64,000 nt of DNA, from the sequence record OQ718158.1. The stretch is one strand, 5' to 3'. The notes beneath the pieces are model-generated. The model saw only the letters and a program-made list of their open reading frames with translations. It had not been told where the DNA came from and searched no databases. How positions within the stretch are numbered: position 1 is the first letter of the stretch; each line of letters opens with the position of its first letter. Positions 46,245 through 46,508 of the stretch are shown here, piece by piece. The translations under genes were made by a program, and so were the position numbers.

Positions 46245-46508
46245 GTAGACGGTTGTATTCAGTACTGAATCACTAGGGGAGGTTGTGATTCCCGATTCAG
46301 TAGTTTTAAAGCAGACCCGTATGTGCCTATACATTACAACTAGTGCACATTTAAAACCTAGACGTAGGATGTAAGTATTCAGTACTGAATAGCTGAAGGA
46401 CTTATTATGGTACAATACAGTGAGAGGTACTTCGAGTATGCTCAGTTCACCTTTAGCTAAAATGGTCACTGTAGGATATTGTTGCAACAGTATTCAGTAC
46501 TACTTTTT
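46245..46508 (+). ncRNA. About 260-nt structured element with three TATTCAGTACT palindromic repeats
   Basis: Repeats at 46256, 46376, 46491; helices TACTGAATC/GATTCAGTA, GTTTTAAA/TTTAAAAC, ATGTGC/GCACAT, AGCTGAAGG/CCTTTAGCT, TACAGTGA/TCACTGTA. Confidence 0.6.

Follow-up and report, generated by a model that had tools for sequence, protein, structure and literature searches.

Why should an unannotated gap in a phage genome hold three spaced copies of one self-complementary word? The gap in question belongs to Escherichia phage vB_Ec-M-J (OQ718158.1, Asteriusvirus, 378,573 bp; identified by megablast), and the jumbo phages of the RaK2 group, in which the same word recurs, are candidates for therapy with a genome that is for the most part unexplained. 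The DNA analysed is a 64,000-nucleotide stretch of this record, here called the window, in which each position equals the record position minus 248,000. The gap extends from EcMJ_478 (46022-46237) to EcMJ_479 (46583-46696), in a region where genes are on the + strand throughout, and it sits within the tRNA island of the phage, with tRNA-Ser, tRNA-Met and tRNA-Asn upstream and tRNA-Thr downstream (ARAGORN and Rfam find five tRNAs in the window). An earlier note, made from the letters alone, had proposed for positions 46245-46508 either an RNA switch or processed non-coding RNA or, at the DNA level, an array of iterons or operators and possibly an origin. Comparison across phage lineages points to a structured non-coding RNA, encoded on the + strand in a module that resembles a gene, a reading to which a probability of roughly 0.8 is assigned. 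There is good comparative support for placing this RNA in what would be a new pseudoknotted family of giant E. coli and Klebsiella phages, kept among tRNA genes.

The repeats and the word they are built on

The three repeats are where the earlier note had placed them, TATTCAGTACT occurring at 46256, 46376 and 46491 with spacings of 120 and 115 nt, and the second does form a perfect 16-bp palindrome, TATTCAGTACTGAATA, which can be read directly from the sequence at 46376-46391 (+). Repeat 1 (TATTCAGTACTGAATC) covers 46256-46271 and repeat 3 covers 46491-46501, both on the + strand. The AGTACT/CAGTACTG palindrome is hyper-abundant in the vB_Ec-M-J genome and is not local to the flagged stretch: AGTACT has 1125 copies genome-wide, or roughly one every 337 bp, and CAGTACTG has 256. 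In the window, where about 21 copies of AGTACT would be expected, there are 163, spread over all three frames, and the word makes up with GTACTG and CAGTAC the top three over-represented hexamers. With up to one mismatch allowed, TATTCAGTACT is present 40 times in the window against 2.8 expected. Because the word is so dense genome-wide, three AGTACT in 265 nt are only mildly unusual. Two perfect copies of the 12-mer TTCAGTACTGAA set 120 nt apart are not expected by chance, this 12-mer having 24 copies in the genome, two of them in the flagged stretch, against none for the reversed control. The palindrome excess is common to RaK2, GAP32, a 371-kb metagenomic phage, fENko-Kae01 and a Yersinia Eneladusvirus, and the literature searched on RaK2-like phages holds no mention of the AGTACT word or of the RNA.

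Several other sites of the word deserve mention in their own right. The left end of the direct terminal repeat (genome positions 1-1760), which is without annotated gene, carries 17 AGTACT sites, among them clusters such as TTCAGTACTGAATGATAGTACT. In RaK2, four copies of TTCAGTACTGAA fall within 650 bp (247314-247959), in stretches that resemble paralogous coding sequence and in which gcgTTCAGTACTGAAta recurs, so that some copies of the 12-mer may ride on a repeated protein motif. An early-promoter cassette, cTTGACTAAATAGTTCAGTACTG(n)TATAAT, recurs in the window at 44116-44143, 44537-44565 and 45297-45325 with CAGTACTG in its spacer, the TG of CAGTACTG doubling as an extended -10 element; at position 45292 a second AGTACT overlaps the -35 box, and a fourth promoter site around 61611 has the same layout with a different spacer. 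The window also encodes a C-5 cytosine DNA methyltransferase (EcMJ_443, 32881-33690; Pfam PF00145, E = 9e-35). Immediately downstream of the flagged stretch, an early σ70-type promoter (TTGACA, 17 nt, TAATAT; 46511-46539, +) serves EcMJ_479 and tRNA-Thr, and the end of repeat 3 lies 9 bp before its -35 box.

Conservation and fold of the core

Within Asteriusvirus, from which 14 copies were aligned, the stretch is 95-99% identical to that of vB_Ec-M-J among 13 phages, compared with about 90-93% for the flanking genes. It is kept in JNE01 and Turkey5 despite a different upstream gene, and also in three phage groups that part ways, each with its own type of downstream sequence, directly behind TTGAC in the downstream promoter; the mosaic junction lies at the -35 box of that promoter. 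Insertions and deletions of 1 and 2 nt are confined to the loop region of a single hairpin (H11, 46424-46443). Since they shift both a micro-ORF on the + strand (ATG at 46408) and an 87-aa ORF on the minus strand, a protein-coding gene was rejected. The annotations that relatives carry for the stretch are discordant in strand and extent. One ORF of 17 codons (MVQYSERYFEYAQFTFS; window 46408-46461) lies behind a fair-to-good ribosome-binding site in the 3' domain described below, and in JNE01 and Turkey5 a 54-aa product is annotated from the ATG at 46408; the ORF at 46408-46461 is probably not a gene. Comparison of 46200-46780 with the Rfam 15 families at E values up to 10 returned a sole match of 11.7 bits, a chance match outside the element. 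Neither ARAGORN nor Rfam RF00005 finds a tRNA in 46238-46582, the relaxed ARAGORN settings giving intron-bearing artefacts only, and as the loop GUUGUGA of helix H4 is not a T-loop, a tRNA, tRNA-like element or pseudo-tRNA remnant was also rejected. The same applies to a mobile MITE-like repeat or paralogue, because blastn and nhmmer searches of the 378.6-kb genome find only the palindrome word elsewhere. By all comparative indications, 46243-46405 (+) is non-coding.

Homologues were sought with a covariance model of the first unit (R1), built from the 14 Asteriusvirus copies, and with a rebuilt model (R3). R1 has a single strong match, at 175699-175835 in Klebsiella phage RaK2 (53 bits, E = 7e-8), a copy that is also in a tRNA island, upstream of tRNA-Leu, and that is common to K64-1, KP13-7, Muenster and RCIP0023, with two diverged relatives at 91-93% identity. 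R3 gives a weaker match in the Klebsiella aerogenes phage fENko-Kae01 (17.6 bits, GC 0.45), which ends 44 nt upstream of tRNA-Gly; its E value is 0.3 for the genome, 0.028 when computed for the aligned 33-kb set and 0.0026 for 3 kb, so that taken alone the match is weak. In all three lineages the RNA is placed in the tRNA island. The GC content of the core is 0.40 compared with about 0.33-0.35 around it, and the RNA copies range from 0.40 to 0.46 in genomes of about 0.32-0.35. Searches of GAP32 (Cronobacter), the 371-kb metagenomic phage, a 33-kb provirus contig, the Serratia/Klebsiella phage KpZh_LPS_45, Kosakonia phage Kc263 and Yersinia phage fHe-Yen9-04 gave no homologue and weak matches only, that of GAP32 falling in coding sequence. 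IMG/VR, metagenome contigs and bacterial genomes were scanned for the pattern as well, with a yield of one further Asteriusvirus-like contig and three chance matches.

The searches also turned up some neighbouring features. On the additional Asteriusvirus-like contig (OEQX01000005.1, L073:7900-8072), a second weak R3 match of 16 bits, which has UACAGUACUGAAC and lies between tRNA genes, may be a chance hit or a diverged paralogue. In RaK2 a second H8-like hairpin (GUAAG ... UUCAGU ACUGAUA GCUGGAA ... CUUAC) lies some 190 nt downstream of the homologue, at 176026-176068, with a terminator-like hairpin after it; the module whose loop presents the palindrome's right arm may recur. Also in RaK2, a non-coding segment between that terminator-like hairpin and tRNA-Leu (L055:16110-16190) is G+C-rich and visibly self-complementary and may be another unannotated RNA. 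A late-promoter-like sequence, TATAAATA, found before the RaK2 copy was discarded as a shared feature, since it is not conserved in vB_Ec-M-J, A4 or 121Q.

The conserved core, of about 163 nt (46243-46405, +), starts 6 nt past the stop codon of EcMJ_478 and, as the covariance model and covariation indicate, consists of seven helices tied by two pseudoknots. H2 (46249-46254 with 46314-46320) closes a three-way junction that holds H3/H4 and H5; three of its six pairs are changed on both sides (AU/GC; CG/UA/UG; UA/AU/CG) and 93% of cells are paired. H3 joins the centre and right arm of repeat 1 (46263-46271) to a 'third copy', GATTCAGTA, at 46294-46302, and carries the hairpin H4 (46277-46281 with 46289-46293), in which three pairs are fully compensated. 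H3 itself is constant in Asteriusvirus and the RaK2 group and covaries in fENko-Kae01 (AU to GC, UA to AU), where the palindrome reads CCAGUACUGG; an A-A mismatch is tolerated at one of its positions in four phages. The small hairpin H5 (46303-46312) keeps its stem while its loop varies (ATA, AAA, TTT), and its place is taken in fENko-Kae01 by another 4-bp hairpin. H6 (46321-46350), with 9 bp, a one-base bulge on the 3' strand and a loop ending in CAAC, has all nine pairs changed on both sides across lineages, with 99% of cells paired. It is followed by a conserved linker, UUUAAAA, and by H7 (CCUA GACG UAGG; 46357-46368), in which two of the four pairs covary. The last hairpin of the core, H8 (46371-46405), has an outer stem (46371-46376 with 46400-46405) and an inner stem that pairs the left arm of repeat 2 (46378-46383) with GCTGAA (46392-46397), leaving the right arm of repeat 2 as its loop (46384-46391). 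In the plain MAFFT alignment the RaK2 group shows A-U replaced by U-A and U-A by C-G in H8, UUCUGU pairing with GCAGAA in compensated form in RaK2, and a G-to-A change in JP4 turns a U-G pair of this hairpin into U-A. A local self-hairpin of the repeat 2 palindrome was rejected because the RaK2 change breaks it and the compensation lies elsewhere.

Within Asteriusvirus alone, the RNAalifold consensus is 99.4% paired with only three covarying pairs. When two lineages are compared in an alignment fitted to the model, 16 of 36 pairs are changed on both sides and 98.8% are paired (slid controls, 27-38%). The covariation analysis that the earlier note had called for gives, across three lineages (alignment A7), both-sided changes at 21 of the 36 nested pairs with 98.1% paired, compared with 28-39% paired in slid controls, and none of 500 shuffles matches the observed covariation values. 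Since alignments fitted to the model, as A5 and A7 were, favour nested helices and are to that extent biased towards it, a plain MAFFT alignment reaching further 3' was examined; H4, H7 and H8 covary also on this alignment, which was fitted to no structure. The folded strand is the + strand, because the vB_Ec-M-J fold includes six G-U pairs that on the opposite strand would turn into A-C mismatches. Three-lineage covariation, conservation above that of the neighbouring genes, frame-breaking indels only in a hairpin loop and these G-U pairs all bear out the structured or processed RNA that the earlier note had considered.

Two pseudoknots connect the helices of the core. PK1 is a kissing-loop contact between the H4 loop GUUGUG (46282-46287) and the H6 loop UACAAC (46335-46340), detected by covariation; it is paired in 14 of 14 distinct sequences and two of its six pairs covary (UA/CG; AU/GU/GC), a count that is independent of the alignment method because covariance models cannot fit pseudoknots. 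PK2, detected by complementarity, joins the left arm of repeat 1 (UAUUCAGUA, 46256-46264) to the right arm of repeat 2 (UACUGAAUA, 46383-46391). Its 9-nt complementarity is read from the sequence, and the 7 bp at its core (46256-46262 with 46385-46391) do not vary in Asteriusvirus or the RaK2 group, all 11 rows counted being 100% complementary. The left arm has become UAACCAGUA in fENko-Kae01, and an exact 9-nt complement, UACUGGUUA, is present in the equivalent loop, closed by GUAAG/CUUAC; as the two are exact complements, two PK2 positions are changed on both sides, and such a partner occurs in 15 of 20000 shuffles. In this phage the arms of repeat 1 have lost the complementarity between their flanks, and each flank fits its distant RNA partner instead. 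H3 and PK2, both derived from the palindrome, are the sole helices constant throughout Asteriusvirus and the RaK2 group, and their covariation support comes from one lineage, fENko-Kae01.

All the strands formed by palindrome arms are built on CAGUACUG, a word carried hundreds of times in the DNA of these phages, and in the E. coli and RaK2-type phages the four strands have their flanks in common, which makes them resemble repeated palindromes. On the comparative evidence, the repeats are strands of an RNA fold, not boundaries or protein-binding iterons; they count as helix strands and not as spacer boundaries because the remaining arms pair with further copies downstream. The supposition that the spacers fold on their own fails, since H8 spans repeat 2 and PK2 joins repeats 1 and 2. 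As for the pairing of repeats with each other, it stands for repeats 1 and 2, through PK2. The two helices that had been singled out as crossing (46391-46399/46450-46458 and 46416-46423/46466-46473) are indeed present in the sequence and do cross, but the first of them competes with H8, has a G-C pair broken by the JP4 change, would be damaged by the RaK2 changes in H8 and is without counterpart in RaK2, so it drops out as part of the pseudoknot.

In Asteriusvirus the core is followed by a 3' domain specific to this genus (46406-46503, +; RNAalifold consensus). Its 6-bp closing helix, H9 (46408-46413 with 46497-46502), ends 1 nt before a U5 tract (46504-46508). H10 (46416-46422 with 46467-46473) corresponds to the second of the crossing helices just mentioned, and H11 (46424-46430 with 46436-46443) has a UUCG-type loop in several phages and one compensated pair (A-U/G-C). 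H13 (46474-46482 with 46487-46495), also with one compensated pair, is a 9-bp hairpin (46474-46495, -7.6 kcal/mol) located 8 nt before the U5 tract. Repeat 3 belongs to this domain and reads TATCCAGTACT in 11 of 14 relatives, where T/C covaries with G/A inside H13; the covarying base is exactly the one that gives repeat 3 its likeness to the other repeats in vB_Ec-M-J, and the third 'repeat' appears in this comparison as lineage-specific. The AGTACT cores of repeats 1 and 3 are invariant, and that of repeat 2 is lost in three Asteriusviruses (AGTTCT in G17, CMSTMSU and SHEFM2K) and in the RaK2 group (TGTACT in RaK2). A search for the 3' domain in RaK2 found no homologue, only H8 matching there. 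The U5 tract comes after the last helices and 2 nt before the -35 box and is terminator-like; because a simple consensus terminator scan makes no call at this tract, the RNA is taken to have a probable 3' end here that would be terminator-like, not canonical.

Expression, function and alternative explanations

In the explanation favoured here, the repeats are strands in the fold of a single RNA. The centre and right arm of repeat 1 pair with the third copy downstream to form H3, the left arm of repeat 2 pairs with GCUGAA in H8, and the two leftover arms, the left one of repeat 1 and the right one of repeat 2, pair together as PK2. In Asteriusvirus a further structured domain of 100 nt follows, ending in a hairpin and U5 just before the next early promoter. 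A promoter scan found no promoter belonging to the RNA itself, and the RNA is likely made early, being co-transcribed with the tRNA-island operon from upstream σ70 promoters, and would accumulate as a stable RNA. Contigs from RNA libraries lend weak support to its transcription: four libraries cover the stretch (4,001 letters compared), as contigs that give no strand, ends or level and may derive from phage DNA, and a wastewater metatranscriptome holds a 203-nt contig on 46307-46493 and none on the adjoining coding bins.

With regard to function, a trans-acting, protein-binding or decoy RNA is tentatively preferred, at somewhat less than even odds. Such an RNA may titrate or partner a putative factor that reads the AGTACT word. 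A cis-acting regulator is rated lower because the neighbours on both sides are swapped between relatives and the RNA is kept. The link to a putative reader of the word is attractive since the strands formed by the palindrome are invariant and agree with the word found throughout the genome, but GAP32, the 371-kb phage and the Eneladusvirus have the word in excess without a detectable RNA homologue, which argues against an obligatory connection between the RNA and the word. A functional tie between the RNA and the genome-wide CAGTACTG word, whether as a reader or guide whose palindrome arms pair with the hundreds of copies of the word in phage transcripts or single-stranded DNA, as a sponge for the protein that reads the word or as a self-assembling dimer or larger homo-oligomer, is improbable. 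Dimerisation through the self-complementary arms is a lead from modelling, a cofolding prediction favouring the dimer by 8-12 kcal/mol over two monomers. Assembly into homo-oligomers has recently been described for other phage-borne RNAs.

A cis-acting RNA switch, in which the core would be the sensor (of a ligand, a protein or a tRNA) and the 3' domain an expression platform choosing between a stop at U5 and read-through, is considered unlikely. The strands CUGAA and UUCAG are degenerate, so several pairings are mutually exclusive, that of 46391-46399 with 46450-46458 competing with H8; the thermodynamic ensemble also populates the full duplex of repeats 1 and 2 (in the centroid, and in the RaK2 minimum free energy fold); and the element ends in a hairpin with U5. 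Three-way junctions with kissing loops moreover resemble some aptamers. However, this alternative helix shows no covariation and is weaker in JP4, RaK2 lacks the 3' domain, and no riboswitch of Rfam matches at E values up to 10. The RNA also follows a stop codon instead of lying in a 5' leader, and the genes downstream have a strong promoter of their own and form a module that differs among relatives. Assignment to a riboswitch class was rejected for the same reasons, the RNA starting 6 nt past a stop codon ahead of a variable module with its own promoter.

A role at the DNA level, in which the repeats would be operators for a putative AGTACT-reading protein clustered upstream of the early promoter at 46511, or an origin-like array, and the RNA structure would be secondary, is highly unlikely, though a putative AGTACT reader may bind these DNA sites. 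The word is under genome-wide selection in all frames, several early promoters have it in their spacer or at the edge of the -35 box, the helices derived from the palindrome (H3 and PK2) are the only unvarying ones in Asteriusvirus and the RaK2 group, and repeat 3 ends close to a -35 box. Against this, repeat 2 loses AGTACT in three Asteriusviruses and the RaK2 group, and in RaK2 the compensation is found in the RNA partner and not in the other arm of the palindrome. In fENko-Kae01 the flanks of the arms covary with their distant partners in the RNA and not mutually. A binding-site array would also leave unexplained the conservation, with compensatory changes, of the 100-nt stretches that separate the sites. 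The iterons of the earlier note are disfavoured by the same loss of the repeat 2 core with compensation at the RNA level, and the palindromes, at distances of 120 and 115 nt, are not phased direct repeats. Its origin fares no better, as the cumulative GC skew rises monotonically across the window with no inflection and no AT-rich unwinding element is seen. The binding sites of SlmA, TrpR, LexA and ArgR do not fit the flanks of the repeats. GTAATTCAGTACTGAAGAGC appears in one paper merely as a wrong prediction made by a program for TrpR.

Hardly any weight is given to a structured 3' end alone, that is, a PeSL-like processing or terminator block that insulates the upstream operon and shields its RNAs from exonucleases, since, although the element lies between a gene and the next early promoter, ends in a hairpin with U5 and has its mosaic junction within the promoter as in PeSLs, a 163-nt core with two pseudoknots, invariant single-stranded motifs and three-lineage conservation is far beyond the needs of a terminator, and the RaK2 core is without a terminator directly after it.

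The structured non-coding RNA that is preferred here provides the first place with a definable role for copies of the AGTACT palindrome, namely as RNA helices whose flanks co-evolve with RNA partners. A single RNA of 163 nt is a concrete and cheap handle, to be probed, deleted or employed as bait, on what reads the AGTACT word. The locus also illustrates how, in raw sequence, a double pseudoknot whose strands derive from a single short word can be mistaken for 'repeated palindromes'.

Comparison with known systems

The family described here adds a well-supported double-pseudoknot RNA to those packed in the tRNA islands of jumbo phages. By position, its closest analogues are the species 1 and 2 RNAs of phage T4 (rnaC and rnaD; NC_000866 annotation), small stable RNAs made with the tRNAs at the end of the tRNA cluster. 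With filters off, R3 was searched against the T4 tRNA region and matches neither rnaC nor rnaD, its best match elsewhere having 7.5 bits, and T4 rnaC ends in a tRNA-like T-arm and acceptor end, whereas the phage RNA described here is without T-loop or tRNA-like domain. A second likeness is to the PeSL cassettes of T4-type phages, which are promoter-terminator motifs at module junctions, short, composite and present in many copies per genome. In both cases a stem-loop is followed by an early σ70 promoter where modules are swapped, the junction here being the -35 box; in contrast to PeSLs, the RNA element of vB_Ec-M-J is single-copy in its genome, about 265 nt long and pseudoknotted.

The three repeats are, in addition, extended copies of the genome-wide AGTACT/CAGTACTG palindrome of RaK2-like jumbo phages, an iterated word comparable to HIP1. 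Their distinguishing feature is that they act as RNA helix strands whose flanks and RNA partners covary, a property not known for the other ~1100 copies of the word. Finally, ROOL and GOLLD are structured phage RNAs of 500-800 nt near tRNA genes that are represented in Rfam and assemble through loop-loop contacts. Compared with these, the core described here is only about 163 nt long and is without an Rfam match; what it shares with them is being a structured, phage-borne RNA near tRNA genes with a loop-loop contact.
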